A stretch of DNA of 64,000 nt from Cycas panzhihuaensis (lineage: Eukaryota > Plantae > Cycadophyta): NCBI GenBank assembly GCA_023213395.1, contig CM041465.1, positions 91,829,741 through 91,893,740 on the forward strand. Reading direction: 5' to 3'. Positions within the stretch are counted from its first letter, which is position 1, and each line of letters opens with the position of its first letter. The translations under genes and the position numbers were made by a program. Below, in pieces: positions 3,290 to 30,287 of the stretch. The notes beneath the pieces are model-generated. The model saw only the letters and a list, made by a program, of their open reading frames with translations, made no database searches and had not been told where the DNA came from.

Positions 3290-5943
3290 TGTCCATTAAC
3301 TTCTACAACTTGGTAATAGTAAGTTTCATATTTATTGTGAAGTTAACATATGGCAAGATGTTGTTTTTTGTCCAGAGTGAACCCTAATCGCTCAGGAAAC
3401 ATAATTTGGGCATAAAAACCTAATTTTGAGTCCATTCTACCTCTCTTGGCTCTCATGCGAAAGGAAAAATGCCTCCCACCTACACTTCTGGTCTCTCCTT
3501 ATATTCTTCTCTTCTCTAAGGGTGAAACCCTAAAATGTAGGTCTGTACCAACTCTTCTCTAGTAGATCTTCCTTCCATGGTGGTCACTGCAGTAGCTGCA
3601 ACAGGTTTTACAGGGTTTTAACTCTCATTCTTGCCTCTAAAAGAAGCCATTCTCCACCTAGCGAGAGGGATCCTCATCCTTTCTTTGGTGCATGAGGAAA
3701 TAGCCATTTTACTTTAGTTTTTGTGACTATATTAGGTTGATTTCTTATTGTTCTTCCCTTTGGCAAGTATACTTGGTATATATTTCCATTTATTACAAGT
3801 CTTACATACATCCTTATCTCTTTTTGGGTGTCCAAAGGAAGGCAAACCCTTCCTTTCTCCAGACATACGTCTCCATACCCCTTAGGTTCTTCTTGAGACA
3901 CATGTAGATGGATTGCAAGATTCTTTTGAGAGGGAGAAGAGGAGATCATAGCTAGGGTCCCAACCCTCATAGCCATATCCTCTAGGGCAGCCCCCTACCT
4001 CTCTTAGCTTTCCTACTCCATATCCATCCTGCACACCAAGAAACTCCTTAGGTGAGGGCCCCTATTGGTCATAGTGTTCACAGCACCTTGCAATGCCTAC
4101 AACTAGCTCTTATATACATCATTTGGTAGAAAGTTTTCTTGTATGTTTTGTCATTTCATGAGATCTCTATCCCCCTTGTATATCTTGCAAAAATTGCAAC
4201 ATTATGACTTTTGCAACATTTACACTTTTTGTAGCTTTTACAACTTTTTGATCCTTGTAAGTTGCATCATTTTTTTATTTGCTTAGAATTATAAACTCTC
4301 TTCTAACTTGTTCCCTGGAGTACTCGGGCATGTAGGAGGTAGCTTGTTTAAGAGAGCTAGCTATTTTGAGGCTCTCCTTTCTCTCACCTTCAAAACCCCC
4401 TTTTTCTCCCAAATATTACTTAGAAACATTTAAGTATATTGTGGGAAGATTAAAAAGTATATTGTTTCTTTACGTTTGAAACATTGAGCAAGTTCATATT
4501 TCATTTTGATGAGCATATGTACACACGCATATATTCGTATACACATGCACATGTATGTTATTGCTTGTTAAAAGGGGTTTGTCCACAAGGGAACTCTACC
4601 TACCTTGAGCAAGCAAGATCGTGTTGAAAGGTACGTATATCTCATTTACATTTATTTTCCTTTGAAGCTTTCCTTTAGAGTTCTTTGTTCTTTTGTAATA
4701 CATTATAGGGAAGGTAAGGAAGTCCCACCTACGGTTTCGTCCACAATGGCAATCATAGCTTGGAGCGTAGGGTGATTGGCAAAAGGAAGGCAATGAAGAG
4801 AAAGGGAAGCACTCCATCAACTGACTTGTTTCCAGGTGCACCTCTTCCAACCTTCCCCTTCCTTCATATTCTTTCCTTACCCCCTTTTCTCCCAAAAAGG
4901 AAATTGGTTGCATTTACGCATCACTTACAATCATTTGTTTTGATACCTACATTCATACAATGGAAAGTATAAAGGAATATCACTCATTTTTGCTCTTTTA
5001 ATCTTTGCATTAATGTGTATTGATCTTGTTTCCCCCTTTCCTCTGGCACAAGCATGAAAAAGGATAACTTAGATTAGTGCATCTCTCATTTTTCTTTCGA
5101 AAGTAAAGTGATAGAAAGGGTTTTCTTTTCTTTGTCACACCCTCCTCTCACACTCACTTTGCATACACAAGAGTAGGAACAAGAAAGGGAACTTGGACTT
5201 TTGATAGTCATCCTTCTTCCATACATCATTAAGAAAAGTTATATGAGTCATTTATACTCTTCTTCTTCTTTGCACTTCCCTTTCTCCCTTCATCTAATTC
5301 TTTTGTTGATAAAGATAAAAGAAAGAGAGGATAAAGAGAGAGAGAAGGAGAGTATCTTTTGAGTTACATTTACTTTACATTGATACTTTACATATTTACA
5401 CTATCTTTAAACAAGAACTAAGACACTATCCAAACCCTCAGTATACTTAGTTCACTTGTTTTGTTTAGTCTAAACCCTAGAGGCTTTCCTTTAGGTGATC
5501 TTTAACAAGATGCTCCACTAGTCTTGTCTCTTTTTTATTTGGTTTCCGCATACTAAATCCTTTTCACATCTTTCAACTAATTGTTTCCCTCTTTTATTCT
5601 ATAGGCCCCTACCCTATTAGGGCTTGACTCTTCTTTTCCTCTTCTTCCAGGAAAGGAGCTTCAATCCTCCCTCTCCTTCCTTCACTCGTTAGGATACGAG
5701 AGTCCTTCCTTAGGCTACTTGGAAAACTAAGGATGCCCTTGCCTAACCCAAATCTGAGAAGGTACCTACCGAAAGGGAAAGTCTTTTGTGCTATTTACGG
5801 GTCTCTGAACCTGCATTCCAATGCACAGATGCCCTTTATGGGTGACCTATCCCCTTGCCCTCAAGGATCTTTAAGCCCCTGGTATAGTGATAGTGTAGGC
5901 TTAATATCCTTATCCTTAGTGACCCCCCAGAGGTGTGCTTCCA
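3290..5943 (+). repeat. Putative 3' LTR (~2.65 kb) of the Tat-like element
   Basis: Begins with TGT right after the PPT-like TGGGGCAAT and ends in CA at the junction with Copia RT. No coding capacity seen. No partner LTR in the window. Confidence 0.5.
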
Positions 5944-7260
5944 CTAATTATAGGCTTATATGCAGATGACCTAGCATATACTGAGAATTGTGATTACTTA
6001 TCCCAAAAGTTTAAGAAAGATATGTGTAAAGAATTTGAGATGACAGACTTGAGACTTATACATTATTTCTTAGGCATTGAAGTATTGCAGGATGAAAAGG
6101 GGATATTTGTTTCCCAAAAGAAATACATATTAGATATGTTACATAAGTTCAACATGAGTAGTTACGAACTACTTGCAATACCAACTGAGGTTGGGTTTAA
6201 ATTGTCTATATTTGAAAAATCTAAATCAATTGATCTTACACTTTATAGCAAGTTGATTGGGAGCCTAACTTACTTAACTTCAAATCGACTAGATATTATG
6301 TATGCTATCAGTATGGTTTCCAGGTTTATTCATGAGCTTAAAGTAAAACATTAGCAAGTAGCCAAAAGAATTCTCAGGTATCTCAAAGGTACTATTGGGT
6401 ATGGTTTACATTACAGATCATTAAAGGATTATAGGTTGATTAGTTATATAGACTCATATTGGACAAGTTGTATAGATGACAAGAAATCTACTTTAGAGTA
6501 TGCTTTCAGTTTAGTTTTAACATTAGTAGCATGGAGTTTAAAGAAGCAGGTAACAATATCTCTTTGTACTACAGAAATAGAGTATAAAGCAACTATAACA
6601 AAAGCTTGTAAAATAGTTTAGCTTAAAAGATTGCTCCAAGATTTACAAAAAGAGTAAGTTGGCCCCATACAGTTGCTTTGTTATAATTAAAGCATAATTC
6701 AGATGATTAGGAATCTACTGTTTCGTGGTAAGATAAAGCACATTGAAACATAACACCACTTCATTAGAGAATTGGTACAACAAGGTGAATTGGAATTAGC
6801 ATATTACAACATTAAAGATCAGCTGGTAGACATTTTTACAAAGGCACTTAGTAAAATAAAATTTATCAACTTCAGAGATAAACTATGAGTCTCCCTAAAT
6901 GGGCATTATAAGGGAGAAATGTTAGAATAATGCCCATATCGGAGTAAGTACCTACCTTAGGAAAATTACCTGCACCGGTATAATAACCCAAATTAGTGGA
7001 GATATTGTGGTTGCACTATATTAGCCACTTGTCAGTGCCAGTCAGTAGTAGACCTTAAGAGTTGTGCCCAAATCCTCTCGATCTCACTTATTTATTCAGG
7101 GGGTCTGAAGACCCTAATGTTCATCAACACCACCATCCTCACGGATTAATGATTGTGCCCTTTCTTGCTTTCATTTCATTTATATTTCTACTCTCCTTGT
7201 CATTTGATTCCATTACAAATAGGAAAAGTAATTTTTCTATAAAATAGGCTTATAATTATT
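5944..7260 (+). mobile_element. Ty1/Copia 3' fragment (RT C-terminus, RNase H, PPT, start of 3' LTR)
   Basis: LYADD, FEMTDL, YFLGIEV, YIDSYW, KHIE and DQLVDIFTK motifs with stops. PPT AAGGGAGAAA is followed by the LTR start TGTTAG at 6920. The right boundary is approximate. Confidence 0.9.
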
Positions 7261-7980: not shown

Positions 7981-10900
7981 TGGATCGTTCCTTCTCATAA
8001 ATAGGGGCTCGTAGAAGTGATAATTAGCAAAAAATGAAGCCAAATAACACGAATGTGCAAGCAAATCACAGAAAATGAATCACCAAAATGAGTACTGAAG
8101 TACTTTCTCCTTTCAAGATATCATACTCAATAACATTACGAGTGGTTTAACCTTTTAAATACACAAGTAAGGGTCTTTATCCTTAATGATTCTATTGGTG
8201 GCCCTAGCGGCCTTACATCTTATTGGACGGCTTAGCGGTCCATACACATAACTTACTAAACCCCTTAATCCTTACTTGTTGGTGGTTCCCTCTTGCTAAG
8301 GAAATGTGGGGTTATGTTACAGGTCCCCCAATCTGAGACGCTGAGTCCCCACAGCGTTGGAGATGAGGATGTTTCTGGATGAACTCATCTGGCTCCCAAG
8401 TAGCTTCATCAGCATCACAGCCGACCCATTGTACCAAGTGTTCAGAAATAGTGCGATTCCGGAGGCGGCACTGGTGACTGGCAAGGATTTTATCAGGAGG
8501 AATTGTAAGAGTTTATTCTTCAGAGAGAATGGGTAGGGTTGTGTAGGGTGTGACTTTAGCTCCAAGGTATTCTTTTAGGCAAGACGCATGGAAGATATTA
8601 TGGATATAAGTGTTTGGGGGGAGTTCAAGAAATACTCGTAGTTGGGTAAGAATGGTAGGTGTTGGCCACGTTGTGATGACCGATATTTTGTCGGGGTCTA
8701 CACGTACCCCTTCTGATGATATGATATGACCCAAATATTTGAGTTCTGATTATCCGAACTCACACTTAGATAGTTTTGCATAGAGTTAGTGGTTCTGCAA
8801 TATTTGAAGAACAATTTCTAAGTGTTGGATATAGAGATCCAGGCAAGCATTATAAATAAGAATGTCATCGAAGAAAACTATGACAAACTTTCGAAGGTAG
8901 GGCCCAAAGATTTTATTCATGAGAGCTTAGAAGGTTGTTGGGGCATTGTAAAGGCCAAAGGGCATTGCTTGAAACTCAAAATGGCCATGATGTGTGCGAA
9001 ATGCTGTCTTATGACAATCTTGTGGGGTAATTGGGATTTGGTAGTAACCAGATTGGAGGTCTAACTTAGAAAAGATGGTTGTGCCATGGATGTCATCTAA
9101 CATGTCATCTATGTGAGGGGTGGGAAACTTATTTTTAATGGTAATCCTATTTAATTCCCTATAGTCAACACAGAGGCGAAAGGAACTATCCTTCTTCCGA
9201 ACTAAGACAATTAGGGCTGCATAAGGGCTTTTACTAGGTTGGATTATGCCCATGTCGAGGAGCTCATTTGTGAGTTTCTCGATTTCATTCTTTTGGAAGT
9301 ATGAGTTACGGTAAGGTCGAAGGCTGATGGGGTCATGGTTAGATTGGAGGTCAATTGTATGATAGAAACCACGGTCGGGAGGGGTGGTGGCAGGCAAAGG
9401 GGCGAATACTTGTTCATATTGGGTAATGACATCCTGGATATAGGGATGAATTTGTGGTTCGATTTAAATATTATTGAGGTGGACTATATACCCTAGGTGA
9501 GATTGAAGATGGTGTTTCATACGTCTAGGAGAGACCACTTGGTTAGGGGGGGATTGCATTCTGTAAATTTTGTGGTTTCGCCCCATATGGTCTTTGAAGA
9601 CAATGAATGGATTTATAAGCGAGTTGTTCGTGCTATAGGTCCCTAGTGTTTACAGCCATTGAATCCCTAAGATGGCATCAGATCCTCCTATTGATAATGC
9701 ATAGAAGTCTGACACTAAAAGGTATGAGCCAATTTGGACTTGGAGGTTTTTAATAACACCTACACAATGGAGTTTCTGGTACCCTAGTAGAGAACATGTG
9801 AAGCCAGTTTTTGGGACAATATATAGGTTAAGTTGTCTAGCAATCGAAATATCAATGAAGTTAAATGACGTGCCACTGTCGATCAAGATAGATATTGGAG
9901 TCTTGCAGAGAATGCCTCTAACTCTTAGGGGTTTAGGGCAGGAGGAGGTGGTAACAACAGATATAGATACTTCAGGTTGGGGGTCTGGTGCAGGATCATC
10001 ATGGGTTTCATCATCAGCCTCTTGGTCAGAGTCAGAATCAGAGGGATCGTCAGGGGAGAGGGATGGGTCAATTGAGAAAACCATACGCCGCGCTTTGCAA
10101 AAACGACCGTGCCTGGAAGTCTATTTTTCTACACACTGCATACAAAGGCTGATCTCGAGTCGACGTTATGCTTCATCTTAAGAAATCTGGACTCTTTTGG
10201 TAGATGTATCCTCACTCTAGTGATCAATAGATGGTTGAGAATCATCCTATCGTGGTCAAGGACGTGTAAAGTCAACTTGAGGATGAGAGGCATCGTCAAA
10301 TCGAGGTCAAGGTCACTAGAAATCTGCTTGTCGAGTGCATGAGAACTAAGAGCTATCACGTCGAATGGCTAAGGATCTGTCTGCCGCAAACTCAGCTTCT
10401 ATTGTGTGGGCCCACTTGAAAGCTTCCTTAAGGGAGTAAATTGCCATTGTCTTTAATCTCATCTGAATACGGTCTTGAAGTCCTGCCACATAAATATCAA
10501 TCACTGTTTGTTTGTCCAAGTTTTGGCTTTGTGGCGTGCAGTTATATAAAGCTTGAAATTCATCCATGTAAGCTTCTACAGTCAATGTCTGCTTAAGCCG
10601 GATGAGTTGTGTGAAAAAAGATTGACTCCATGTATCTTCATATTTCTCGAAGAAATAACTAGTGAAGTGAGACCAAGTTTGGTGAGAGGGATATTCCCAC
10701 TTCCATCAGTTAAACCAATGGTGAGCTCGACCATCTAAGTGAATGGAAGCGTATAAGAGTTGGTCCTCTTCTGACATCGGATGGAGAGTGAAGTAGGATT
10801 CTAACTTATTAATCCAGCTTCGAGTGCACTCTCTATTCACGTCTGGATCAAAGGTAGGAATGTTGATCTTATGGTGGAAAAACGGCTGTCTTGGTGAAGA

Positions 10901-11573
10901 ACCTCTTGTATATGCATTGCTTCCTAGAGAAGGGGGAGGTTGGTTGCCCGTTAAGGTAGAAGCTCATGTGCTTTGGGGTTGGGTTGACACCCACTGTTGA
11001 AGCATTTTAATAATCTCTTTCTTGGTGTTGTCCAAGTCAGATTTGGTAGGAATGCTACTAAGTTTATCGCTGACCTCTATTTTGAAGTTAGACAAATCAT
11101 TGGTTAACTCAGAAATTTTTTCTGTTTGATTTTTTGCCATTGGAGTTGAAGAAAGGGATTAAAGAAGCGGGAGTAAGTAGAAAGAAGAGAAAGAACAAAG
11201 TGGGATAGATTCAAGAAAGAACGGGATATAAGAATAAGGAGTTGCTATATGGGAAAGAAAGGGCAAATAAGGGAATGTGGGGTGTCTATAGCCTGTTGAC
11301 CCCAAAATTACATAAGCAAGATATTTAGTCCACTAGAAAGAGCAAAAAAAACTTATCGAAATGGGATGTATGAGTTTTAAGATGAATTTGGAGTGGTGGG
11401 GCCCACTAGTGGCCTAGGTACAAAAAGAGTGAAAATTTGGGTATAGACTAACCTAGTGCAAAATGACCCTTACGAGATGCTAATCGAATTGAGGTATATG
11501 AGTTATAAGGGTTTTTTTTTGCACTGTGAGTAAGAGCTAAGTGGGTTTTTTCTTTTTCTTTTTTTTTTCTTTA

Positions 11574-11611
<38 letters not shown>

Positions 11612-12730
11612 CCTTCTTGGCTCTCTCTTTTTCCTTTTTTTTTTTTTTTTTTTTTCAGAGGCTTGACTATTTTGACAAGTTTTGAATTCAAGCAGTCAGT
11701 GGCTTGTGATTAAGATTAGGGCAGGGGAAGCAGCGAATGATCAGATGTATCCTACCCCCTGCAGAATGAGGTGTGCTTGGTCTTATAGGCCTGCCAATAA
11801 ACTTCTAATACAGAAGTTCGGGGCAGGTAACTTCGTGGCGCTAACCCCTAACCATTGCACTGCAAGACTTCAGCGGCCGATAGGTTACCTGCACTAAGAA
11901 GGGTTTTGGAATCCTAAAGGGGTCCTCCTATATACTTGGAGGTACATGGAGACACACTTCCGTAGCCAGGTTCTGTCTAGGGCTTGGTTCAAGAGTGTTA
12001 TCTCTAGTCCTTCACGCAAGGGCCAGCAAAGCCACGATGCGCTTAGCTAGAATGACAGATCCCTGTGATCTTTAAAGACCCCCGGTACAGGGTCTCTACC
12101 TAACTACTTGGGTAGCCGCCCAGCGGTGTTATCTACCCTTGGAATATAACCCAATGCAGAAAAAGAAAGCTTAAAAATTGAATTGAATGTAGAAGAAATA
12201 AATTGCTTGCGGTACCTGAAGGTCGAAATTTCCCTTCGCTTCGCGACCTCTAATATGTCCTGCTACCATTCCTCAATCTTCTTGGAGAGAGTACTGAGTG
12301 AAGGTCTTTCCTCAATCTCTGCCTAGGGAGAGAGAGTACTCAATCATACAGGGAAAAAACAAAAATTGCTATTTCGAGCAGCTTCCCACGATTGCGAACG
12401 CAGGTATGATACCACTTGGACCGTTCCTTCTCAGAAATAGGGGCTCGTAGAAGTGATAATTAGTAGAAAATAAAGCCAAATAACACGAATGTGCAAGCAA
12501 ATTACCAAAATGAGTACCGAAGTACTTTCTCCTTTTAAGATATCATACTCAATAACATTATGAGTGGTTTAACCCTTTAAATACACAAGTAAGGGTCTTC
12601 ATTCTTAATTATTCTATTGGTGGCCCTAGTGGCTTTACATCTTATTGGACGGCTTAGTAACTTACTAAACCCCTTAATCCTTACTTGTTGGTGGTTCCCT
12701 CTTGCTAAGGAAAGGTGGGGTTATGTTACA
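7981..12730 (-). mobile_element. Ty3/Gypsy chromovirus (Reina-like) with both LTRs and a deletion of RNase H and most of integrase
   Basis: LTRs at 7981-8321 and 12417-12730 (TGTAAC...CCA on minus). TSD GAAAG at 7976-7980 and 12731-12735. iMet-type PBS TGGTATCATACC at 12414-12403 and PPT at ~8322-8334. Gag ~11140-10090, protease ILIDSGT (9650-10084), RT (RLCVDYRELN, SKLDLQSGYYQI, MPFGL), chromodomain LVQWVG...EATWE at ~8440-8390. Confidence 0.95.
11510..11656. repeat. Poly-T / (TA)n microsatellite in the chromovirus leader
   Basis: Directly visible low-complexity tract. Confidence 0.9.
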
Positions 12731-13442: not shown

Positions 13443-16400
13443 TATTATAAATTTATTGTATTTTAATATAATTCTCTACTTTACTGATCATATATATATA
13501 TATAGATAGATACATAGATACATAAACATGTAAAATAGAAACATGTTCCTAAAAGACTATAGCATACCATTAAATATCAAATAAAGTGATGTGGTGATAC
13601 CATGTATATTTAGTATAAACCGTACAATGATACTACAAAAACATTAAAAGAAAGGCATGATACAATAGTATGCTACCATAGATAAAACAAAGCTACATGT
13701 AGGGATACAACATGAATTGTGAACAGAGATGTAATAATAAGGGATAATACCACAGGAACATCCACAACAGTAATAGTATGAATGATGAAACACCATGGAC
13801 AAACTATGATACAGTAGCAAAGACATGCGATATGACAGAAAAAACATAAAATCAGCAAAACATCAAGCCAAATTCCAAAATCATGATCACAATAGATAGG
13901 GCATGCATTAATCCTTAGTCTAAAAGCAAAACTAAATAAAAAATAAAATGAATAGTGACTTATTTAAGCAAAAGTAAACAAAGATTAGGACTATCCTAGA
14001 GTAGACACTCTTAAAAGGCTTAGGATCCAAATGAACCTAAAGAGAAGGTATTTATAGTTAGTGGATTTAGAGAATAAATCTTCTAAACTGGTATAGAAAT
14101 CAATTTTTGAAAGAAATATATTATTTTTTAAGTCTTAATTATGAAGTTGGCCTCAAAGAGTAAGAAATAGAACCATAAGAGAAATCAAAACTATAAAAGG
14201 AGCATAAATTCCTCATACAAAGTTTGTTTCTAGGCCATGAATACTCAATTTATATCTACTCAATGAGATATACGTAATAAACTATGTGAGAAACAATTGC
14301 ATTTAAAAATAAGGTCAAAATGTAAAAAATGATAAATATGAATAAAAATTGTGATAGAATAGGCACATGCACATAATCATTATATCACAGGTATAGAAGG
14401 AAAAATACAAACAAAATGACAATGCACATGTACACAGGTTGACAGGTGAAAAACCCCTTCTAGGGAAGAAAAACCACCTCCTAATCTAGATTGTATTAAT
14501 AAATGAATGAAAACTAATACAATAACCAACCTCTAAAATACAGCCTAGTTTCAGGCATATGGACAGACCTCCTAGATTCCTAGAACTTATTCCATGAATC
14601 TAGGAACCTAATAAATAGGACAAAAGTTCCGCATTTCAACGACCATCTACAATTCAATTAACATTTAACATAAGTTTATAACTTTAGAATCACTTAAATT
14701 ATTTTTAAGACATGTGATTTAAATAATAACATTAAAATACATAAGTTTGCATTCTATAATCTAACATCCCCCTTTAATGTAAACTTTTGTACTTGAGAGA
14801 AAAGAAGATCTTCATCACGATGATCCCCCTTTAATGGAGACTTCGTTTATCTACAATAAATCTCTGAGATGTAAAAACTTTGGTTCAGTTAATGACTTCG
14901 TAAGAATATCAGCAATCTGTAAATCTGTTAGACAATAAGACAAACAAACAAGATTATCAATAACTAGATTACGAATAAAATGTTGATGTAATTTAATATG
15001 TTTAGTGCTAGAATGAAAAACAGGATTAGTAGCAATAGCAATTGCACCTTGATTATCAACTTTAATTTCAATTGAAGAGTTTAGAGTCAGACCAATTTCA
15101 TTTAGCAGTGATTTTAGCCAAAGTGCTTCTTTACCAACTTCGACTAATGCTCGATATTCAGCTTCAGTTGTTGATAACGCCAGTGTCTGCATTCTTTTGC
15201 TTGACCAAGTAATAGGTGAAGAATCAATAAAAAATACATAACCGTAAGTAAATTTACGATCATTTGAATCACCTGCCCAATCGGAATCTATATATCTAGT
15301 TAATATTAATGGTTTATTACAAAAGTTATAAGTTAAACCATGAAACACAATATTCTTTAGATAGCGTAAGATTCGTTTGGCTGCTTTCCAGTGAAATTCG
15401 TGTGGTTGTTACATATATCTAGAGCATAAAGCAACAGCATAAGAAATGTCAGAGCGGGTATGTGTAAGATAAATTAGACTACTAATGAGTTATCAGTATA
15501 GAGTTGGATCACATAACGGAGTTGAACAATCAGTGGACAGTTTAACTCCTGATTGTAAAGGATTGGATACCAGTTTAGCATTGTCCATGTTAAACCGCTA
15601 AATTAAATCAAGAATATACTTAGGTTGGGATAGTGTTATATTTGATTGATTTTGATAAATTTATAAACCTAAAAAGTAATGTAATAGACCTAAATCGGCC
15701 ATTTCAAATTTGTTCATTAAAGTTGATTTAAGATGATGAATATTATGGGTTGATGATCTAGTGATAATAATGTTATTAACATAAAGAATTAGAATGGTAA
15801 GATTTTTATCTTCATGTTTAAAATAAAGATTTGGATCACTAATACATCTAGTGTATCCAATGTGGATTAAGTAATCATCGACTTTGGTATACCAAACTCG
15901 AGGAGTTTGTTTTAAACCATAAATAGATTTTTTAAGTTTACAGACTAAATTAGGATTTTCGATAAATCCAGGTGGTTGTGATATGTAGATCTCTTCTTTG
16001 AGATCACCATTCAAGAAAGTGCTCTTAACATCCATTTGGTGGATTTCCCAACTAAATTTAGTTGCAAGAGCAATAACTGTCTTGATTGTATTCATCTTTG
16101 CAACAGGAGCAAAGGTTTCATTATAGTCAATGCCATCTATTTGAGAAAATTCTTTGGCAACAAGGCAAGCTTTAGATTTTTCTATTGTGCCTGTTGAATT
16201 ATATTTAGTCCTATAAACCTATTTACAGTCGACTACATTTTTCCCAGGTGGGAGAGAAACAAAATCCTAGGTAGAATTTTTAATTAAGGCAGCAAATTCA
16301 GTCTGCATAGCATCTTGCCATACAAGATTGTTGCTGGCTTGTTTAAAAGTTTTGGGATCATTATTTTCCATTATTTTTGCCATTAAGGCAAAATTTGTAT

Positions 16401-19400
16401 AAAGTTTTTACGCATGTATACGCCTAGTATCAGTAGGATTGCCTACATTAGATCCAGCATCAGCAAGCATTTTGGTTGCCCAAACTGGTTGCTTGTGAGT
16501 AACTGAATCTGAGGTTGTAGGTTGATTTGATGTGCTAGCTTGAAGAGAATGATCTGTTTCAGCGGGTTCTAATAGGGTCCAATTTTGGACTTGAGTTGAT
16601 AAAGAATTTATGATTTCTAAATCAACTTGTTTATCAGAATCATCAACCAAACGAGTGTTAGTTAACAAATCTTCAATAGGAAGTTCTACATAAGTAAATG
16701 TTGAAGTAGAGCCTTCTTCATCAAATACTACATCATGCAAAATAGAAATGTTATGTATGATTAGATCTAAAAGTCTATAGGCTTTACTCTCTTATTTGTA
16801 ATAGCGAAGATGTATTTTTAACTTTTTTTATCTAACTTTTTATGTTTTTTGTGAGGGATATGTCCCCACGCGATACTACCGAAAATTCATAAATGTTGGA
16901 CAGATGGTTTTTTTCCAGACTATTTTTGTTCTGGAGTGATGTTTTGTAAACTTTTACTAGGTAAACGATTTAATAAATAATTAGAGCAGTTAATTGCTTC
17001 TGCTCATAATTTTAGATCGAGATTCTTTGCATGTAACATGCAATGAGTCATTTCAACAAGAGTGCGGTTTTTGCGTTCAGCAACACCGTTTTGTTGAGAC
17101 ATGTATGCAACTGAATGTTAGAATTTAATTCCATGTGATTTGCAGAAAGAGGTGAAATTTTTACTTAAATATTCCTTAGCATTATCAGATCAAAATATTT
17201 TGATTCTTAAATTGGACTGATTTTCTACTAACGTTTTATATTCAACGAAAATGTCGAACACTTGACTGCGTGTTTTGAGTATATAAACCCAACATTTTCT
17301 TGAATAATCATCAATGAATGTAATGAAATAACGAGATCCTGAGTATGATGGTACGTGAAAAGGTCCACACATATCAGAGTGGACAAGTTCTAGTGGAGCA
17401 GTTGCTCGGTATTGAGTTTTGTATGGAAATGGATCCATGTGTTATTTGCCTGTCACACAGGCTTCACAAACACCATAAATAGTGTTTAATCATGGTAAAC
17501 CATGGACCATTTCATGCTTAATTAAATATTGCAATTTGCCATAGCTAATATGGCCAAATCTCGCATGCCAAAGTTTGATGACTAAGTCAGATTTGGTAAC
17601 GAAGGCACTAAATGATTTTGATTTATTATTTTGAAAACTGGTCATACTATAGAGACCTGTATTATGATCAACAGGTCCTAAAGCAATACGTTTGAATTTG
17701 TGTAATGGATCTTTAATGACAAATTTATTTTTCTAGAATTCGACAACAAGGTCTTTCTGGAAAATTTGATATACTGAGAGGAGGTTTGGTAACAAACCAG
17801 ATACGTAAAAAACGTCCTTGATTAAACCATCCTTTAGGGTAACATCGCCAGATCCTTTGACTTTGAGTTGATTACCACTACCGAAAGAAATCTCTTCTTT
17901 AGAGTTCGTTTCGAATTAATAGGTGGTTAAGTTTTTCTGGTGTCTAGTCATATGATGGGATACACCAAAGTCAATGATTTATTATGGTGGTTAGTTGGAA
18001 GGAGCAACAAACGCAGAAGTTGTTGCTGTCAAAGAACGATTATGAAATTAACGGTTTTGTGGTCGTGATTATGAATGTGAATTCGATTGGAAATAGGATT
18101 GAGAATGGGATTGCGATTTATTTTGTAATCCCTTGGAAGCTTTCCATGCTTCCAAAGCTATTCTACTTCTACAGACATCAATAGTATGGCCTCTTTTATG
18201 ACAGTAGGCACAACTAGTATTTTGAGAAGAAGATGCATGGTTTTTATTAGAAATGAATTGATTGGAAGTATTCTAGTTTTTAGTTAAACCAAAATATTTA
18301 ACATTATTTTGAGAATTAGATGGTGAACCTCGATGAGGTTTATTAAATTTTTTATTGTTATTATGAAAGTTGTTATTCTGTTGTTTATTTTTAAATTGTG
18401 GCTTAGTTTTAGAAAACAAAACCTGTGAATGATCTTTTATTGCACATGTTCTGATTAACATTGTTTGATGTTCAATCAACTGATTTGTTAGCTGATTGAA
18501 TGTGATATGTGGATTGCCAGCTTGTTGTCTGGCATCTTGGTAAAGATTGAAGTGTTTTGGTAATTTATTAACTACAAGACGTCTGGCGTGTAAATGTCTT
18601 TGATATGCGTAGTTATTTTTTCTATATCACCTTCTTTGGTTTTTTATTTAATGCAGTTATCTAGATCTTTATTGATTGATTGAATTTTTGTTAAAAAATC
18701 CTCAACATTTGTAAAGTCGTCAAAAGTCAGATTATACAATTGTTCTTCTAGGATAGCTACCTGATGTGTATCAAACTTGTCATATTTTTCTTCCAAAGTT
18801 TTCCGCATGTTGGCTAAGTCTTTTTTTTCAGAAAACTACCGACTGATTTCTGATGAGAGAGAATTTAATATGGTGCCTAATGCGGCATCTGAGTTCATCA
18901 GATATACCATAAGATTCTCAGTAGCATCTGCTTTTGGTTTTTGGAATTCACCTGTCACATATCGCCATACTTTTCTTTGTTTGGTGATAGGATATGTGAT
19001 TCCTCCAACAAGATAATTTGAGCCGATTAATCTTTGGAATTGGAGCAGCGGTGTTGTCACGATATTAATGCCATATTGGGAGTGTTAAGGTGTATTTGAA
19101 GATTAAAAAATTATGAAGATGACTTGAAAAAATAATTACCTAGTGCAAAATACTAATCTTGTTAATAGATCTAATTCACAAAGACATCTTAATTTGCATG
19201 GATTGATTTTAAAATAAAAAAATCATGTGTTTTTAAACAAACAACAATTTCTTAAGCAGTTATTTTTGAAAAACCAGTTTTCTTTTAGAAAAAAAATAGT
19301 TCCCTTTAGGAAAAAAAATCTCCTTTAGAAAAATAAATTGTCCCCCTTAAAAATAATAATTCCCTTTTAGAAAAAAATTAAACAATTTTCTTTAACGAAA

Positions 19401-20564
19401 TAAGTGATTTAAAAAAAAAAAATTAACTAGGCATTTTGTTTCCCTTTTTATATAAAAAAAATGTATAATGTTAAGGATTAAATTTAAATCTTATAGATTA
19501 AGTGTTAAAAAGGAAATTAATAAATGTAATGGTAAAAGGTTAATTAGATTTACCTAGGATTAACTATATTTGTTTTAAGTAATTAAAATGTAGTTAAATC
19601 AAATCGTTAAAATGTATTAAAGGATAATAATAATAAGATAATGAAGTTTATATATACATTATAAGGAGAAAAGTTAATAGAGTAAGATTTTATTTAAATA
19701 TTCATAAAATGTTTAGAGGGGAAAGAGGAGAATGTAATTAAGAAAAAAAATTTGTATTGAAAAAGAGGGGGGGTATTAAATTTATTTTAACAAAGGTATT
19801 ATAGGAGGGGTTTAAAGTTTGTTTTAATAAAAATGTTTTAAGGGTGGAAATTAGATTTAAGTCAAAGTATAAAATATAATGTGGATGGGGGGGGGGGCGC
19901 ATTTGATTTTAAATCAAAAAACGCAAAGGATAATAGGATGGACTCATACTATAAGGTTTAATAGAGAAACTTTGATTAAAGTTAAAATGATTTTGTATTA
20001 AGATAAAGTGGGGGGTTTTTAATCTTAAATCGAAGTGTAGAATATAATAAGGAGGGGACTTTGATTTAAATCAAAGTAATAAATTTAATGGAGGGAACTT
20101 TATTTTAAATCAAAGTGTTAAATTTAATGGGGGGAAAACTTTGATTTACAACAAGGTATTAAGATTAATAAAAAAGGGTTTTCGGCTTTGATTCATAAAA
20201 AATTAAAAGGTATTTATAAGATTTAAAAGAGTGGGGGGGCGGGGGGGACTTTGATTGAAATCAACGTATAAGATATAATAGTTAAAATCAAAAAATGATT
20301 TGAATTAAGAATAAAAGACTTTATAAAGTTTAGAAGAGGGGGTTGATTCATTTGAATCAAAAAATTAAAAGATTTTTTATAAAGTTAAAGGGGGGGGTTA
20401 GATTCAATTGAATCAAAAATTAAAAGGTATTTTTATAAAGTTAAAAGGGGGGGTAGATTTATTTTAAATAAATAAAAAAAAAAAAAAGTAAATACGGACG
20501 CAGACCCGACAGACTTTATGTGTTTTAAAACACAAAATCGAAATTTGTTTTAATTTGGGGTCCG
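13443..20564 (-). repeat. Left arm of the giant inverted repeat (flank + 3' LTR + gag-pol + part of the leader)
   Basis: Reverse complement of 21663-27967. Mirrored ORF pairs include 15661..16095(-)/25278..25712(+) and 13673..13858(-)/27524..27709(+). Confidence 0.95.
19840..20470. repeat. Degenerate array of palindromic ACTTTGATTTAAATCAAAGT-like motifs separated by G-runs in the Copia leader
   Basis: Perfect 20-bp palindrome at 20058-20077. Variants near 19851, 19901, 19968, 20017, 20097, 20138, 20248, 20343 and 20399. Confidence 0.7.
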
Positions 20565-21662
20565 AGAGGTAAAGATGAGGAAACCCTACCTCATTCTTTC
20601 CATGGCGGCGGCGTTCGCTCCTCTTTGTAGGTCAACGGCGATTGCATTGGAGCGGCAGCGATGCGTGTTGCAGATTGATCGAGGAGGAGCAGCTCGGTCT
20701 AGCTTGGGAATCTTCCTTGGCAACGTTGCATCACCCATTCAGTGGAAACAGTTAGAAACAGAACGAGTCTCTGGATCTGGAACGACGGGTTGTCTCAGGG
20801 CGTGGGCTTCATTTCAAGAATTCATCATTGCTCGGTTGCCATTATTACGTTGTCTTGTAACAGGTCATTCCTCTGCGAAGCGTGATGGTTAGTGATCTTC
20901 TGCTAGGGTTCTTTGATTTTGTGGAGAAGGTAATCTTTCTCTATTGAGAAAATCTTTGAGAGCTTTTATGGCATATTCTGTCCAATGGACTTGTATCTCT
21001 CTTTCTGTGGCGTCCACTGTTTCTGCAGGTTGTTCTTGGCGGCAGCATGCTCAGCGTCTTCGTAAGGAGTCCTCTTTCAAGCTCTTCTTTTTCAAGATAC
21101 GGGGTTTATGTCTTTGATTTGCCTCTTCTCAAATCACACGAGGCTAAAGTTGACATGGCACTACGGATTCAAGCGAGGCGGTAGAAATCACGAATGCGAC
21201 GTATGAGGCGCGTCTTTAGAAGACCAGATGGATGCCTTTGCCAGATGCCTTTGTTGTAAAGATCAGAGCCGCCAGTCCTGTGAAGCTGTGCCCTAAAAAA
21301 AATCCCTTGTGTCCTCTTCTTCTTGTTATTCCTTACATATTACTAAACTGGGGTTCTGACTCTTGTTTTACTTTCACAGACATGTACATATTCGGGCTGA
21401 AACTTGGTTTTGTCAAGCCTTAGGAGAAAGGGTTAAACTGATCCTTTTTGTGTACAAGATGTAAATTTTGACTGGTTAATGGAAATTTTGCTTTGACAGA
21501 TTTTGTGTAAAACAGTTTATGGAATTCCGTATGAATGATCTATGACCCATTAAAAAAAAACTGGGGTTTGTTGTGAAAATTGATGAAAATATAATAGCTG
21601 GAAAGGTATTAATAAAATGTTTTATGCAAAGACATTATGTAACATGTAAGTAGGCTAAGTCC

Positions 21663-24600
21663 CGGATCCCAAATTAAAACAAATTTCGATTTTGTGTTTT
21701 AAAACACATAAAATCCGCCGGGTCTGCGGTCGTATTTACTTTAAATTTTTTTTTTTTTTTTTTTTTTAAATAAATCTACCCCCCTTTTTAACTTTATAAA
21801 AATACCTTTTAATTTTTTATTCAATTGAATCTAACCCCCCCCCCCCCCTCACCCCCCCCTTTAACTTTATAAAAATCTTTTAATTTTTTATTCAAATGAA
21901 TAAACACCCCCTTCTAAACTTTATAAAGTCTTTTATTCTTAATTCAAATCATTTTTTGATTTTAACTATTATATCTTATACTTTGATTTTTAAATCACTT
22001 ATTTCGTTAAAGAAAATTGTTTAATTTTTTTCTAAAAGGGAATTATTATTTTTAAGGGGGACAGTTTATTTTTCTAAAGGAGATTTTTTTTCCTAAAGAG
22101 GACTATTTTTTTTCTAAAAGAAAACTGGTTTTCAAAAATAACTGCTTAAGAAATTGTTGTTTGTTTAAAAACACATGATCTTTTTATCTTAAAATCAATC
22201 CATGCAAATTAAGATGTCTTTGTGGATTAGATCTATTAACAAGATTAGTGTTTTTCACTAGGTAATTATTTTTTCAAGTCACCTTCATAATTTTTTAATC
22301 TTCAAATACACCTTAACACTCCCAATATGGCATTAATGTCAGGGATAGTCACCTGCGTTCCAATTCCGATTAATCGGCTCAAACTATCTTGTTGGAGGAA
22401 TCACATATCCTATCACCAAACAAAGAAAAAGTATGGCGATATGTGATGTGAATTCCAAAACCAAAAGCAGATGCTCGAGAATCTTATGGTATATCCGATG
22501 AACTCGGATGCCGTGACAGGCACCATATTAAATTCTCTCTCATCAGAAATCAGTCGGTAGTTTTCTGAAAAAAAAGACTTAGCCACTGTCTGGAAAACTT
22601 TGGAAGAAAAATATGACAAGTTTGATACACATCAGGTAGCTATCCTAGAAGAACAATTGTATAATCTGACTTTTGACGACTTTACAAATGTTGAGGATTT
22701 TTTAACAAAAATTCAATCAATCAATAAAGATCTAGATAACTGCATTAAATAAAAAACCAAAGAAGGTGATATAGAAAAAATAACTACGCATATCAAAGAC
22801 GACGACACGCTCGTACGTCTTGTAGTTAATAAATTACCAAAACACTTCAATCTTTACCAAGATGCCAGACAACAAGCTGGCAATCCACATATCACATTCA
22901 ATCAGCTAACAAATCAGTTGATTGAACATCAAACAATGTTAATCAGAACATGTGCAATAAAAGATCATTCACAGGTTTTGTTTTCTAAAACTAAGCCACA
23001 ATTTAAAAATAAACAACACAATAACAATCAATAAACCTCATCGAGGTTCACCATCTAATTCTCAAAATAATGTTAAATATTCTGGTTTAACTAAAAACCA
23101 GAATACTTCCAATCAATTCGTTTCTAATAGAAACCATGCATCTTCTTCTCAAAACACTAGTTGTGCCTACTGTCATAAAATAGGCCATACTATTGATGTC
23201 TGTAGAAGTAGAATAGCTTTGAAAGCATGGAAAACTTCCAAGGGATTACAAAATAAATCGCAATCCCATTCTCAATCCCATTTCCAATCGAATTCACATT
23301 CATAATCACGACCACAAAATCGTTAATTTCATAATCGTTCTTTGACAGCAACAACTTCTACGTTTGTTGCTCCTTCCAACTAACCACCACAATGGATCCT
23401 TGACTTTGGTGTATCCCATCATATGACTGGACACCAGAAAAACTTAACCACCTATTAATTCGAAACGAACTCTGAAGAAGAAATTTCTTTCGGTAGTGGT
23501 AATCAACTCAAAGTCAAAGGATCTGGCGATGTTACCCTAAAAGATGGTTTAATCAATGACGTTTTTTACGTACCTGGTTTGTTACCAAACCTCCTCTCAG
23601 TATATCAAATTTGTGAGAAAGACCTTGTTGTCGAATTCTGGAAAAATAAATTTGTCATTAAAGATCCATTACACAAATTCAAACATATTGCTTCAGGACC
23701 TGTTGATCATAATACAGGTCTCTATAGTATGACCAGTTTTCAAAATAATAAATCAAAATCATTTAGTGCCTTCATACCAACCGACTTACCATCAAACTTT
23801 GGCATACGAGATTTGGCCATATTAGCTATGGCAAATTGCAATATTTAATCAAGAATGAAATGGTCCATGGTTTACCACCATTAAACACTATTTATGGTGT
23901 TTGTGAAGCCTTTGTGACAGGCAAATAACATATGGATCCATTTCCATACAAAACTCAATACCGAGCAACTGCTCCACTAGAACTTGTCCACTCTGATATG
24001 TGTGGACCTTTTCACGTACCATCATACTCAGGATCTCATTATTTCATTACATTCATTGATGATTATTCAAAAAAATGTTGGGTTTATATACTCAAAATAC
24101 GCAGTCAAGTGTTCGACATTTTCGTTGAATATAAAACGTTAGTAGAAAATCAATCCAATTCAAGAATCAAAATATTCCGATCTGATAATGCTAAGGAATA
24201 TTTAAGTAAAAATTTCACCTCTTTCTGCAAATCACATGGAATTAAATTCCAACATTCAACAGCATACATGCCAACAAAACAAAGGTTGTTCACGAACGTA
24301 AAACCGCATCTATTGTTGAAATGACTTGTTGCATGTTACATGCAAAGAATCTCGATCTAAAACTATGGACAGAAGCAATCAACTGCTCTAATTATTTATT
24401 AAATCGTTTACCCAGTAAAAGTTTACAAAACGTCACTCCAGAACAAAAATAGTCTAGAAAAAAACTATCTGTTCAACATTTATGAATTTTCGGTAGTATC
24501 GCGTGGGGACATATCCCTCACAAAAAACGTAAAAAGTTAGATAAAAAAAGTTAAAAATACATCTTCGTTGACTACAGCGAAGAGAGTAAAGCCTATAGAC

Positions 24601-27600
24601 TTTTAGATTCAATCACGCATAACATTTCTATTTTGCATGATGTAGTATTTGATGAAGAAGGCTTTACTTCAACATTTACTTATGTAGAACTTCCTATTGA
24701 AGATTTGTTAACTAACACTCATTTGGTTGATGATTCTGATAAACAAGTTGATTTAGAAATCATAGATTCTTTATCAACTCAAGTCCAAAATTGGACCGTA
24801 TTAGAACCCGCTAAAACAGATCATTCTCTTCAAGCTAGCACATGAAATCAACCTACAACCTCAGATTCAGTTACTCACAAGCAACCAGTTTAGGCAACCA
24901 AAACGCTTGCTGATGTTGGATCTAATGTAGGCAATCCTACTGATACTAGGCATACACATGCGTGAAAAGTTTATACAAATTTTGCCTTAATGGCAAAAAT
25001 AATGGAAAATAAGGATCCCAAAACTTTTAAACAAGCCAGCAACAATCTTGTATGGCAAGATGCTATGCAGACTGAATTTGTTGCCTTAATTAAAAATTCT
25101 ACCTGGGATTTTGTTTCTCTCCCACCTGGGAAAAATGTAGTCGACTGTAAATAGGTTTATAGGACTAAATATAATTCAACAGGCGCAGTAGAAAAATATA
25201 AAGCTCGCCTTGTTGCCAAAGAATTTTCCCAAATAGATGGCATTGACTATAATGAAACCTTTGCTCCTGTTGCAAAGATGAATACAATCAAAATAGTTAT
25301 TGCTCTTGCAACTAAATTTAGTTGGGAAATCCACCAAATGGATGTTAAGAGCGCTTTCTTGAATGGTGATCTCAAAGAAGAGTTCTACATATCACAACCA
25401 CCTAGATTTATCGAAAATCCTAATTTAGTCTGTAAACTTAAAAAATCTATTTATGGTTTAAAACAAACTCCTCGAGCTTGGTATACCAAAGTCGATGATT
25501 ACTTAATCCACATTGGATACACTAAATGTATTAGTGATCCAAATCTTTATTTTAAACATGAAGATAAAAATCTTACCATTCTAATTCTTTATGTTATTAA
25601 CATTATTATCACTAGATCATCAACCCATAATATTCATCATCTCAAATCAACTTTAATGAACAAATTTGAAATGGCCGATTTAGGTCTATTACATTACTTT
25701 TTAGGTTTATAAATTTATCAAAATCAATCAAATATAACACTATCCCAACCTAAGTATATTCTTGATTTAATTTAGCGGTTTAACATGGACAATGTTAAAC
25801 TGGTATCCAATCATTTACAATCAGGAGTTAAACTGTTCACTAATTGTTCAACTCCGTTATGTGATCCAACTCTATACCGATAACTCATTAGTAGTCTAAT
25901 TTATCTTACACATACCCGCCCTGACATTTCTTATGATGTTGCTTTATGCTCCAGATATATGTAACAACCACACAAATCTCACTGGAAAGCAGCCAAACGA
26001 ATCTTACGCTATCTAAAGAATACTGTGTTTCATAGTTTAACTTATAACTTTTGTAATAAACTATTAACATTAACTAGATATACAGATTCTGATTGAGCAG
26101 GTGATTCAAATGATCGTAAATTTACTTTCGATTATGTATTTTTTATTGATTCCTCACCTATTACTTGGTCAAGCAAAAAAATGCAGACACAAGTTATCAA
26201 CAATCGTTGAATATCGAGCATTAGTCGAAGTTGGTAAAGAAGCACTTTGGCTAAAATCACTACTAAATGAAATTGGTCTAACTCTAAACTCTTCAATTGA
26301 AATTAAAGTTGATAATCAAGGTGCAATTGCTATTGCTACTAATCCTGTTTCTCATTCTAGCACTAAACATATTAAATTACATCAACATTTTATTCGTAAT
26401 CTGATCGATAATCTTGTTTGTTTGTCTTATTGTCCAACAGATTTACAGATTGCTGATATTCTTACGAAGTCATTAACTGAACCAAAGTTTTTACATCTCA
26501 AAGATTTATTGCAGATAAAATAAGTCTCCATTAAAGGGGGATCATCGTGATGAAGATCTTCTTTTCTCTCAAGTACAAAAATTTACATTAAAGGGGGATG
26601 TTAGATTATAGAATGCAAACTTATGTATTTTAATGTTATTATTTAAGTCACATGTCTTTAAAATAATTTAAGTGATTCTAAAGTTATAAACTTATGTTAA
26701 ATGTTAATTGAATTGTGGATGGTCGTTGAAATGCGGAACTCCATTCTAACGAACCTTTGTCCTATTTATTAGGTTCCTAGATTCATGGAATAAGTTCTAG
26801 GAATCTAGGAGGTATGTCCATATGCCTGAAACTAGGCTGTATTTTAGAAGTTGGTTATTGTATTAGTTTTCGTTCATTTATTAATACAATCTAGATTAGG
26901 AGGTGGTTTTTCTTCCCTAGAAGAGGTTTTTCACCTGTCAACCTGTGTATATGTGCATTGTCATTTTGTTTGTGTTTTTCCTTCTATACCTGTGATATAA
27001 TGATTATGTGCATGTGCCTATTCTATCACAATTTTTATTCATATTTATCATTTTTTACATTTTGACCTTATTTTTAAATGCAATTGCTTCTCTCACATAG
27101 TTTATTACGTATATCTCATTGAGTAGATATAAATTGAGTATTCATGGCCTAGAAACAAACTTTGTATGAGGAATTTATGCTCCTTTTATAGTTTTGATTT
27201 CTCTTATGGTTCTATTTCTTACTCTTTGAGGCCAACTTCATAATTAAGACTTAAAAAATAGTATATTTCTTTCAAAAATTGATTTCTATACCAGTTTAGA
27301 AGATTTATTCTCTAAATCCGCTAATTATAAATACCTTCTCTTTAGGTTCATTTGGATCCTAAGCCTTTTAAGAGTTTCTACTCTAGGATAGTCCTAATCT
27401 TTGTTTACTTTTGCTTAAATAAGTCACTATTCATTTTATTTTTTATTTGATTTTGCTTTTAGACTAAGGATTAACGCATGCCTTATCTATTGTGATCATG
27501 ATTTTGGAATTTGGCTTGATGTTTTGCTGATTTTATGTTTTTTCGGTCATATCGCATGTCTTTGCTACTGTATCATAGTTTGTCCATGGTGTTTCATCAT

Positions 27601-27879
27601 TCATACTATTACTGTTGTGGATGTTCCCGTGGTATTATCCCTTATTATTACATCTCTGTTCACAATTCATGTTGTATCCCTGCATGTAGCTTTGTTTTAT
27701 CTATGGTAGCATACTATTGTATCATGCCTTTCTTTTAATGTTTTTGTAGTATCATTGTACGGTTTATACTAAATATACATGGTATCACCACATCACTTTA
27801 TTTGATATTTAATGGTATGCTATAGTCTTTTAGGAACATGTTTCTATTTTACATGTTTATGTGTCTATGTATCTATCTA

Positions 27880-27923
<44 letters not shown>

Positions 27924-27967
27924 CAGTAAAGTAGAGAATTATATTAAAATACAATAAATTTATAATA
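21663..27967 (+). repeat. Right arm of the giant inverted repeat (inverted Copia copy with 3' LTR 26599-27028 and ~0.9 kb of duplicated flank)
   Basis: Mirror of 13443-20564 with scattered substitutions. It lacks ~19413-20257 of the left arm (junction near 21990). PPT CATTAAAGGGGGA is followed by TGTTAG at 26599. Confidence 0.95.
27871..27920. repeat. (TA)n microsatellite, the inverted copy of the LINE tail at ~13490
   Basis: Visible; longer than the left-arm copy. Confidence 0.9.
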
Positions 27968-30287
27968 GGTATAGAAGGAAAAACACAAACAAAATGACAA
28001 TGTACATGTACACAGGTTGACAGGTGGAAAACCCCTTTTGGGGAAGAAAAACCACCTCCTAATATAGATTGTATTAATAAATGAATGAAAACTAATACAA
28101 TAACCAACCTCTAAAATACAGTCTGGTTTCAGGCATATGGACAGACCTCCTAGATTCCTGAAACTTATTCCATGAATCTAGGAACCTAATAAATAGGACG
28201 GAGGTTCGTTGGAATGCGGTTCCGCATTTCAATGACCATCCACAATTCAATTAACATTTAACATAAGTTTATAACTTTAGAATCACTTAAAATATTTTTA
28301 AGACATGTGACTTAAATAATAACACTAAGATACATAAGTTTGCATTCTATAATCTAACAAATTGACAAAAGAGAGCATGATTATAATAGAAAAAAGATAC
28401 ATGTTTTGTATGTCGACTCAACTTTACTGTAGCTCTATAAAATATGAAGAATGTCGTAAGAGACATCATCCTTATAAGAGATATAATATATACAAGCAAA
28501 CCAAACAAATGCTCAATCACATATAGTGTAAAATAAACAAGCAGCAAATGCAAATAATTAAATATAGTACCAAGCAAATAACAAATAACCAATACATACC
28601 TAATGAGCTAGAAAATAAAATCATATATAAAATTCCTAAATTTTGAGTAGAGGACACAAAATTGAGGAAATTATTTATATTAATATAAGAATCAATGATA
28701 TAGATATTAAGAAAGAGTTTTAAAATTAATGTTTACATAGATTATATTATGATGTAATTAGGGTTATAACTTAATAGTGTAATCTTAGTATATCTCAAGG
28801 GTTGTGTAAGTGAGTCACAAAAGTCATCACTTAGTGAATGACATATCCACAACAATTATAAACTCATTAATGAACAAGTGACACTTGTGAGACCAATTAC
28901 TAGTCTAATAGATAATTATTGATCCTAAGTTATATTAACATTCGTATCAGTATTGTAGATAATGTATTCAAAGTTCTTAATAAATTATGAAGAAATTTAA
29001 TGGTAGATTAATTCTGCTTGAGAAGTACTTTATTGTAATTCTATCCCTAACTCACGTTTTTCTCACACCTCTTAACCTTAACTAGCATCCATAGGTGCAA
29101 ACATTAACTAATGTTATTATACAAATCATAATTGAATGAAGGAAAAAGCAAACAAAATAGAAATTAGTTAGATGTTAACTTTGTAAAATGCTTGTTTTTG
29201 TTTTGATAGTATAGAATAAATGATAGCATAAAGGCTTTTAGAATGATATCTTCTTCGAGTTGTAGTACATGGAAAATGCCCAAGGGCATATTTAAACAGT
29301 GATTTATCACTAAGGAGAACACATGGGATGAGAATTGTACAAGTCTATATGCATTTGATGTTTATAATAAGAGAATAAACAAAGAACTCATGAAATCGTT
29401 GGTTACTAAAATAATGGTTAGTGGCGAAACTCTATGTTCTCTTTAATGTCTATAAATTAATTAACACTAAGACAACAAATGTGATTCATGCATTTTAGGA
29501 ACGTGATTTGCAATGCAGTTGGATACTTCTAGTGTATAATCTATAGAGATTTCAGAATGATTACAACCTTAGGAGATAAGTTGGACCCACCTTAAGATGG
29601 TATTTAAAAGAGGAGAGTATTGAGTGTTATAGGAAAGCCACCCAACTAAGGTTGTGAGGCCCTAAAATCCACAAAAAGCACAAGAGACCAAACCTTGATT
29701 CATTCGGTCTAATCTCAAACACAAACACAATAGGGCACTTAGGAGGTGATTAAAGCCATGGTCTCTAAGGGCAGTAAATTCAAGTCCCAAGTCCTTGAAG
29801 ATGTTGGCCTCTCTAATCACAACCCTATCTAGTTTGTCTTAGCACATGGAGAGATGAGGAAAGCACACTAAAGCAAGTCTACCTACTCAATAAAGGCGTG
29901 GAGTTTGCATGCTTGGTCAAGGGGTCAAATCCCTTGGAGGTGTATCTTCAGTGTGTATGGTTGACCCACGCCACACTTTGTTCTGACAAGTTGATTCTTG
30001 TATCACTTAGTGCTTTGTAGGATTCATTCAAAAAAAAAAAATAAATGGGGAGGTCCACTTTAAGCTCAACATCTCCCACCTTAATAATGATTTGTTTATA
30101 TGGAGCATCAAACAAATTTGGAGTCTCTCACCTAGGCCACCTATGACTTAGATTGGATCACCTAATGGGAGAAGCTATCAACATAACTATATCATTCTCA
30201 AGAGGTTACAAGAAGCAAGTAGTTATGATAAGTCAAAAAACTAATAAAACCAATGCCAAAGAGTTTAGTAGAAATAAGAGTGGCCTT

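Follow-up and report, generated by a model that had tools for sequence, protein, structure and literature searches.

A 14.5-kb inverted repeat in the Cycas panzhihuaensis genome, probably formed by DNA-level duplication of a single Copia insertion

We analysed a stretch of 64,000 nucleotides, referred to as the window, from the cycad Cycas panzhihuaensis (assembly GCA_023213395.1, contig CM041465.1, positions 91,829,741 to 91,893,740 of the forward strand; coordinates below count from its first letter). It contains a long terminal repeat (LTR) retrotransposon of the Ty1/Copia type whose sequence is present twice, in opposite orientations, around a loop. The locus is probably the fossil of a single minus-strand Ty1/Copia insertion with the target site duplication (TSD) AATTG, which later underwent an inverted duplication at the DNA level. 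The evidence comes from the outer end of the inverted arm, which runs beyond the LTR: the LTR copy is followed by CAATT (27029-27033), the reverse complement of the TSD, and then by a 0.9-kb copy of the left flank with 98.3-98.6% identity. Reverse transcription and integration cannot copy flanking host DNA; therefore, the presence of both the host flank and a TSD copy in the inverted arm indicates that the duplication took place at the DNA level. Together with the single TSD pair at the outer ends, this supports the proposal of the initial annotation of this sequence that the locus derives from one insertion and not from two head-to-head elements. As it stands, the locus is a hairpin-capable inverted repeat derived from a transposable element (TE), of a kind already known in plants.

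Architecture of the inverted repeat

The arms were defined by repeat finding and by BLAST comparison of the left half with the reverse complement of the right half. Two collinear inverted blocks were obtained, which together give an inverted repeat of ~14.5 kb. In the first block, 13443-19415 aligns with 27967-21987 at 95.5% identity (5,956 columns, 190 mismatches and 39 gap openings). The second block, 20258-20564 against 21989-21663, is 88% identical in the BLAST alignment, with seven gap openings in 329 columns, and 95% identical when mismatches alone are counted. The 842 bp between the two blocks (19416-20257) are present in the left arm only, and the spacer, or loop, at 20565-21662 (1,098 bp) has no second copy inside the window. 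The initial annotation had described inverted copies around a loop of ~1.1 kb and three LTR copies, one of them inverted; both descriptions hold, and its coordinates all proved right to within 1 bp, with the left-only stretch of 842 bp going unmentioned.

From left to right, the locus begins with flank A (13443-14346), AT-rich non-Copia DNA that lies outside the TSD and makes up the outer part of the left arm. It is followed by the left copy of the TSD (14347-14351), the 3' LTR (14352-14766, minus strand), the gag-pol region (14767-19084, minus strand), and the leader with a non-coding stretch that we call B (19085-20564, minus strand). On the other side of the spacer lie the inverted copy of B and the leader (21663-22316, plus strand), assigned from the BLAST pairing of the arms and lacking the 842-bp stretch, the inverted gag-pol copy with its sense on the plus strand (22317-26598), and the inverted copy of the 3' LTR (26599-27028, plus strand). 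The inverted TSD and flank copy described above come next (27029-27967, with the copy of flank A, A', at 27034-27967) and are joined directly to the truncated 5' LTR (27968-28359, minus strand), after which the right copy of the TSD closes the locus (28360-28364). Both outer copies of AATTG were read directly and match each other; we estimate the chance of a 5-bp match at the local base composition at ~0.002. A (TA)n/(ATAG)n microsatellite lies ~50 bp inside the outer end of each arm (13490-13530 and 27885-27922) and differs in length between the arms; the copying that produced the inverted arm ended just past it.

The duplicated element is a degraded Copia copy

All three LTR copies start with TGTTAG on the sense strand of the element, and the two complete copies, the 3' LTR (415 bp) and its inverted counterpart (430 bp), end with CTATCA. 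The 5' LTR keeps 392 bp, including the TATA-like CCTATTTATT (minus strand, 28188-28197), and lacks the last 38 bp of U5, in agreement with the earlier suggestion that the U5 end and the primer binding site (PBS) had been lost while most of this LTR, with its TATA-like motif, was kept. Across 13443-28359, no PBS of the tRNA-Met type (TGGTATCAGAGC, with up to two mismatches) was detected, and the leader contains no second LTR end. The PBS is absent because the rearrangement removed it along with the U5 end; therefore, this copy is a rearranged remnant rather than an intact member of Ty1/Copia. At the opposite end of the element, the polypurine tract AAAGGGGGA (minus strand, 14767-14775) abuts the 3' LTR and has its copy at 26590-26598. 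Next to the 3' LTR, on its upstream side, each arm carries two copies of CATTAAAGGGGGAT spaced 47 bp apart, a motif that includes the polypurine tract (14767-14826 and 26539-26598).

The gag-pol region is complete in extent but broken, with a longest open piece of 185 amino acids in either arm. The pieces of its open reading frames (ORFs) were searched one by one, and neither a consensus nor a repaired or joined frame was used. In the left arm they gave, in order along the minus strand, matches to the Pfam families Retrotran_gag_2, zinc knuckle, Pol_BBD, gag_pre-integrs, rve, SH3_retrovirus and RVT_2 (E = 6e-54 for the last), which is the Copia-type order of gag, protease, integrase and reverse transcriptase; the piece covering the RNase H region had no Pfam match. 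The closest protein relative of the RVT_2 piece is 75% identical, and the named ones, gymnosperm Copia entries from Pinus taeda, Ginkgo and Taxus, are 57-62% identical.

Upstream of gag, the element has 1.5 kb of non-coding DNA (19085-20564). Within it, tandem units composed of TTTGATTTAAATCAAA and G runs are followed by an A run at 20475-20490. The tandem array covers 19416-20460 in the left arm and 21778-21911 in the right arm; TTTGATTTAAATCAAA is a perfect 16-nt palindrome, and the array is high-copy in three runs of DNA reads (see below). The spacer has no similarity to Copia, and its GC content is higher (0.43 vs ~0.30). Its ORFs had no Pfam match and no usable match in the protein atlas, and an Rfam search found nothing at the gathering threshold or at E values up to 1, apart from one match at chance level.

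The duplication followed the insertion

The three LTR copies record the order of events. In the three-way comparison, the 5' LTR stands alone at 16 sites, where the other two copies are identical; the inverted LTR has six private changes, and the 3' LTR has three as well as a private 15-bp deletion. The topology is thus ((3' LTR, inverted LTR), 5' LTR), and the Kimura two-parameter (K2P) distances are 0.022 for the 3' and inverted LTRs, 0.053 for the 5' and 3' LTRs, and 0.065 for the 5' and inverted LTRs. This site pattern indicates that the duplication came after the insertion. If equal rates are assumed, the LTR sites would place it at about 44% of the insertion age. A published rate of 1.3e-8 per site per year translates into an insertion ~2-2.5 million years ago and a duplication 0.6-1.8 million years ago; with a conifer-like rate of 2.2e-9, both events become about six times older.

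The coding region shows in what state the element was copied. Among the stop positions that bound the ORF pieces of the left arm, at least 10 have a stop in the corresponding triplet of the right-arm alignment, whereas six or seven are private to the left arm. Since stops are common to both arms, the copy was already a pseudogene when it was duplicated. Identity between the arms dips to 91-94%, with more transversions, at 16743-17342 and 18843-19142, and neighbouring 300-bp windows show 96-99%. These local dips may reflect patchy conversion by other copies of the family, or uneven decay.

Formation of the inverted arm by repair

The junction between the flank copy and the 5' LTR (27967/27968) has 1 bp of microhomology. 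Between 21662 and 27968, 38 bp of U5, the PBS and some of the leader are missing. The ends of the arms next to the spacer, TCCGAGA and TCCCGGA (20561-20567 and 21660-21666), are complementary at 6 of 7 positions, with the boundary blurred by later divergence. The simplest history that we can propose begins with a break in the 5' part of the element, somewhere between what is now the spacer and the end of U5, after which ~6 kb of the left side of the element, comprising the leader, gag-pol, the 3' LTR and 0.9 kb of host flank, would have been copied backwards. Synthesis could have been primed by the broken end after it folded back, either on itself or on the sister chromatid; or else an inverted sister fragment could have been captured. 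End joining would then have linked the new strand to the opposite side of the break, already trimmed 38 bp into the 5' LTR, with loss of the PBS and the remaining leader.

Inverted duplications formed by fold-back are documented in humans; their spacers, which are not duplicated, measure 0.77-70 kb, and their junctions show microhomology of 2-8 bp (PMC3907307). The human cases and the Cycas locus share two inverted arms and a kilobase-sized single-copy spacer (766 bp-70 kb there, 1.1 kb here), as well as the loss of the sequence beyond the break. They differ in that the human duplications are megabase-scale, terminal and formed via dicentric chromosomes, whereas the copy described here is interstitial, 6 kb long, and was re-joined with 1 bp of microhomology.

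Read data bearing on the spacer and on the abundance of the family were obtained from short Logan contigs (~100-400 bp) of four runs, matched at 90% identity or more to 19000-24999. The best-matching runs are DNA from three differently labelled organisms, with 32-39% of the sampled words matching. Each DNA run contributed ~17-18 thousand contigs on this interval, mostly 90-95% alike. Summed contig depth ranged from 30,000 to 60,000 in gag-pol and from hundreds to thousands in the leader array; values for the inner ends of the arms and for the spacer were 13-760. Several related organisms thus contain this Copia family in very high abundance, and the spacer, too, is moderately repeated.

A different breakpoint can be drawn at another candidate junction, 19408-19415 / 20250-20257, which shows GATTTAAA/GATTGAAA. 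According to this alternative, which we regard as possible but rather unlikely, the inner repeat (20258-20564 / 21663-21989) and the spacer together form a nested element that is older than the duplication and bounded by long terminal inverted repeats; its right end broke, and the 8-bp microhomology GATTTAAA/GATTGAAA allowed copying to be primed at 19415, the novel junction is 21987/21989, the 842 bp were never copied, and the real spacer is 19416-21986. BLAST indeed divides the arms at exactly these blocks, the inner block is less similar than the outer one (88% vs 95.5%) and richer in indels, and the left-only stretch stops on its right exactly where the inner repeat has its outer end. The inner repeat and the spacer are, moreover, multi-copy, and several contigs in each of the three organisms cross 20567, at the boundary of arm and spacer. 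However, when mismatches alone are counted, the divergence of the inner block (4.9%) equals that of the gag-pol arms (4.4%), the inner-block indels sit in G and T runs, and an unequal deletion (contraction) in the tandem array accounts for the 842 bp equally well.

Potential for hairpin RNA and silencing

The 5' LTR has kept its U3 and the TATA-like motif, both of which face towards the antisense arm. The initial annotation had proposed that a transcript from the 5' LTR reads the antisense arm, the loop and then the sense arm, folds into ~6 kb of double-stranded RNA (dsRNA), and gives rise to small interfering RNAs (siRNAs) that silence the family in trans, in the manner of Mu killer on MuDR. 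The layout fits, with a promoter-bearing LTR, an antisense arm, a spacer and a sense arm in this order, and the abundance of the family in at least three labelled organisms means that there is a family to silence. Inverted repeats made by TEs are highly productive sources of siRNAs in plants (PMC13409302), and LTR hairpins have been proposed as the trigger of silencing for the Copia element EVD (PMC11624286). Nevertheless, we consider this proposal improbable for the reasons given below.

More than 9 kb must be transcribed before Copia coding sequence can pair, which then gives a stem of ~6 kb, and the leftward path is AT-rich and holds 17 AATAAA motifs before the spacer; six of these, and two ATTAAA motifs, lie in the first 0.94 kb, within the flank copy. 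The copy was dead, and its LTRs had diverged by 2-3%, before the duplication, so that the promoter may already have been silenced by then. The arms are now 1.5-5% diverged; only 45% of the 21-mers of the left arm can still pair perfectly with the right arm, and perfect stretches reach ~210 nt at most. Finally, the family reached a very high copy number nevertheless.

None of the matching runs listed is on record as RNA. A possible RNA run (X24; 50 million letters, the RNA type being a guess) had family-level contigs at 90-97% identity over gag-pol but none over 19000-20999, 21400-21999 or either loop junction, which is a weak test. About 180 bp of the spacer (21056-21238) lie inside a longer X24 contig whose sequence on either side differs from the window, and a skip of 43 bp is seen at 21162-21206; this part of the spacer belongs to a dispersed, possibly expressed repeat.

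A shorter stem lies much closer to the promoter. R-U5 of the 5' LTR can pair over ~190 bp with the antisense inverted LTR 0.95 kb downstream, and the first 1.37 kb of RNA downstream of the TATA-like motif is predicted to fold with this LTR/inverted-LTR stem at a minimum free energy of -446 kcal/mol. In this model, the ~190-bp stem is the more reachable hairpin compared with the ~6-kb stem. Between the 5' LTR and the inverted LTR, 25% of the 21-mers are perfectly complementary. Any transcription entering this non-mobile inverted repeat could thus give RNA that folds, the LTR stem forming first. In addition, the putative promoters of the 5' LTR and the inverted LTR face each other over the flank copy, from which we infer that convergent transcription could be a second route to LTR dsRNA. 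Both an LTR hairpin and convergent LTR transcription have been proposed for a nested EVD insertion (PMC11624286).

Since TE inverted repeats yield siRNAs, and since a single such locus, Mu killer, can silence a transposon family (PMC2725412), some siRNA output is plausible. That the locus yields hairpin-type siRNAs above the family background is the less probable outcome, though one with an appreciable chance. That it ever controlled the Copia family is improbable at best. An extended version, in which the abundant family is silenced in trans by this locus, now or in the past, through the LTR hairpin, plus a gag-pol hairpin formed by read-through, with siRNAs setting or reinforcing methylation, is likewise improbable. 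We estimate that the locus would today behave like other methylated TE inverted repeats.

Weighing the reconstruction

Several observations weigh against a single insertion followed by inverted duplication, at least in its simplest form. Divergence between the arms is uneven, 0.0145 in the flank and 0.046 in gag-pol; a single event with uniform decay is therefore insufficient, and faster decay of the methylated TE or conversion by family copies is needed. The break is placed provisionally, since stretch B and the spacer may be either part of the family leader or a nested element. Furthermore, among the short contigs listed for 19000-24999, none bridges 20564/20565, 21662/21663 or 21987/21989. 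A search of metagenome contigs for exact patterns of the 27967/27968 and 21662/21663 junctions returned no match for either, but this was a long shot and carries little weight.

The lack of junction support among the contigs listed would also be expected if the assembly contained a chimeric or haplotype-collapsed join that put an inverted second copy (allele) beside the first, and foldback chimeras are a known artefact of long reads (PMC6218980). Such an artefact would, however, require two false junctions, the second landing exactly in a truncated 5' LTR with a matching TSD; the 4.5% divergence and 39 indels between the arms are not what a read-level palindrome would show, and the three LTRs diverge in an order that agrees with a real history that can be dated. 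We thus regard an assembly error as very improbable. A head-to-head pair of Copia elements or an antisense nested insertion, configurations that do occur, as for EVD (PMC11624286), is ruled out for practical purposes, as the inverted arm carries the flank and TSD of the first copy (98.6%), has no 5' LTR, PBS or TSD of its own, and has at least 10 stop positions in common with the left arm.

Comparison with known systems

Among known silencing loci, a close counterpart is Mu killer of maize (Slotkin et al. 2003, 2005, as cited in PMC2725412 and PMC11624286). Both are natural, non-mobile inverted duplications of part of a transposon, with arms placed so that one transcript could hold both and fold into a long hairpin. 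Mu killer derives from the DNA transposon MuDR, and its hairpin transcript, its small RNAs and heritable silencing in trans were shown genetically. The Cycas locus, by contrast, consists of a Copia LTR retrotransposon with arms of ~6-7 kb that are 1.5-5% diverged and include host flank; the element was dead when duplicated, and the locus is known from its sequence alone.

The antisense nested insertion of EVD (Copia93) in Arabidopsis (PMC11624286) likewise involves Copia, with LTRs in opposite orientation 1-2.5 kb apart, and there, too, a role in hairpin or convergent siRNA production is at the stage of a proposal. It arose by transposition of a second copy, whereas in Cycas the same copy and its flank were duplicated at the DNA level, and the event is old. 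The 115 IR+ clusters of Wolffia (PMC13409302) are similar in being TE-made inverted repeats in a TE-rich plant genome; they were defined by measured siRNA output, whereas the present locus was defined from DNA.

If the reconstruction is correct, hairpin-capable TE loci of a TE-rich plant genome can arise through repair-driven inverted duplication and not through nested transposition alone, and such an inverted repeat can persist while its arms diverge by 1.5-5%. A trans-silencing function, if real, would make this locus the first natural counterpart of Mu killer among LTR retrotransposons, and one that came from a DNA repair accident rather than from transposition. LTR hairpins have been discussed as one candidate route by which a newly active LTR retrotransposon may first be silenced (PMC11624286). 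A Copia locus whose own promoter faces its own inverted copy would offer a concrete test case for this route, with a built-in control: the unique 0.9 kb of host flank in the arms (A and A') can give small RNAs from this locus only.

Neighbouring features of the window

Just left of flank A lies a Gypsy-type LTR retrotransposon on the minus strand (8078-12657), delimited by direct repeats at 8078-8235 and 12500-12657 (94% identity). It has a PBS-like TGGTATCATACC at 12403-12414, an RVT_1 piece at 8930-9397 and an RVP_2 piece at 9653-10084. To the right of the foldback, direct repeats of ~260 bp (93% identity), 2.8 kb apart, are found at 38161-41306, the right one with an internal 37-bp duplication, together with a PBS-like TGGTATCAAAGT on the minus strand at 40942-40953. 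By these features, the interval looks like a small LTR element of the terminal-repeat retrotransposon in miniature (TRIM) or large retrotransposon derivative (LARD) type. Two collinear pairs of direct repeats at 54723-60714 (83% identity, ~5.7 kb apart) are probably the LTRs of an older retrotransposon. About 22 kb to the right of the foldback, 50565-50987 on the minus strand matches a kinesin motor / microtubule-binding domain (E = 2e-11); this open piece probably represents a host kinesin exon. On the plus strand, 5935-6351 is a fragment of the reverse transcriptase of another Copia element (RVT_2, E = 3e-15).

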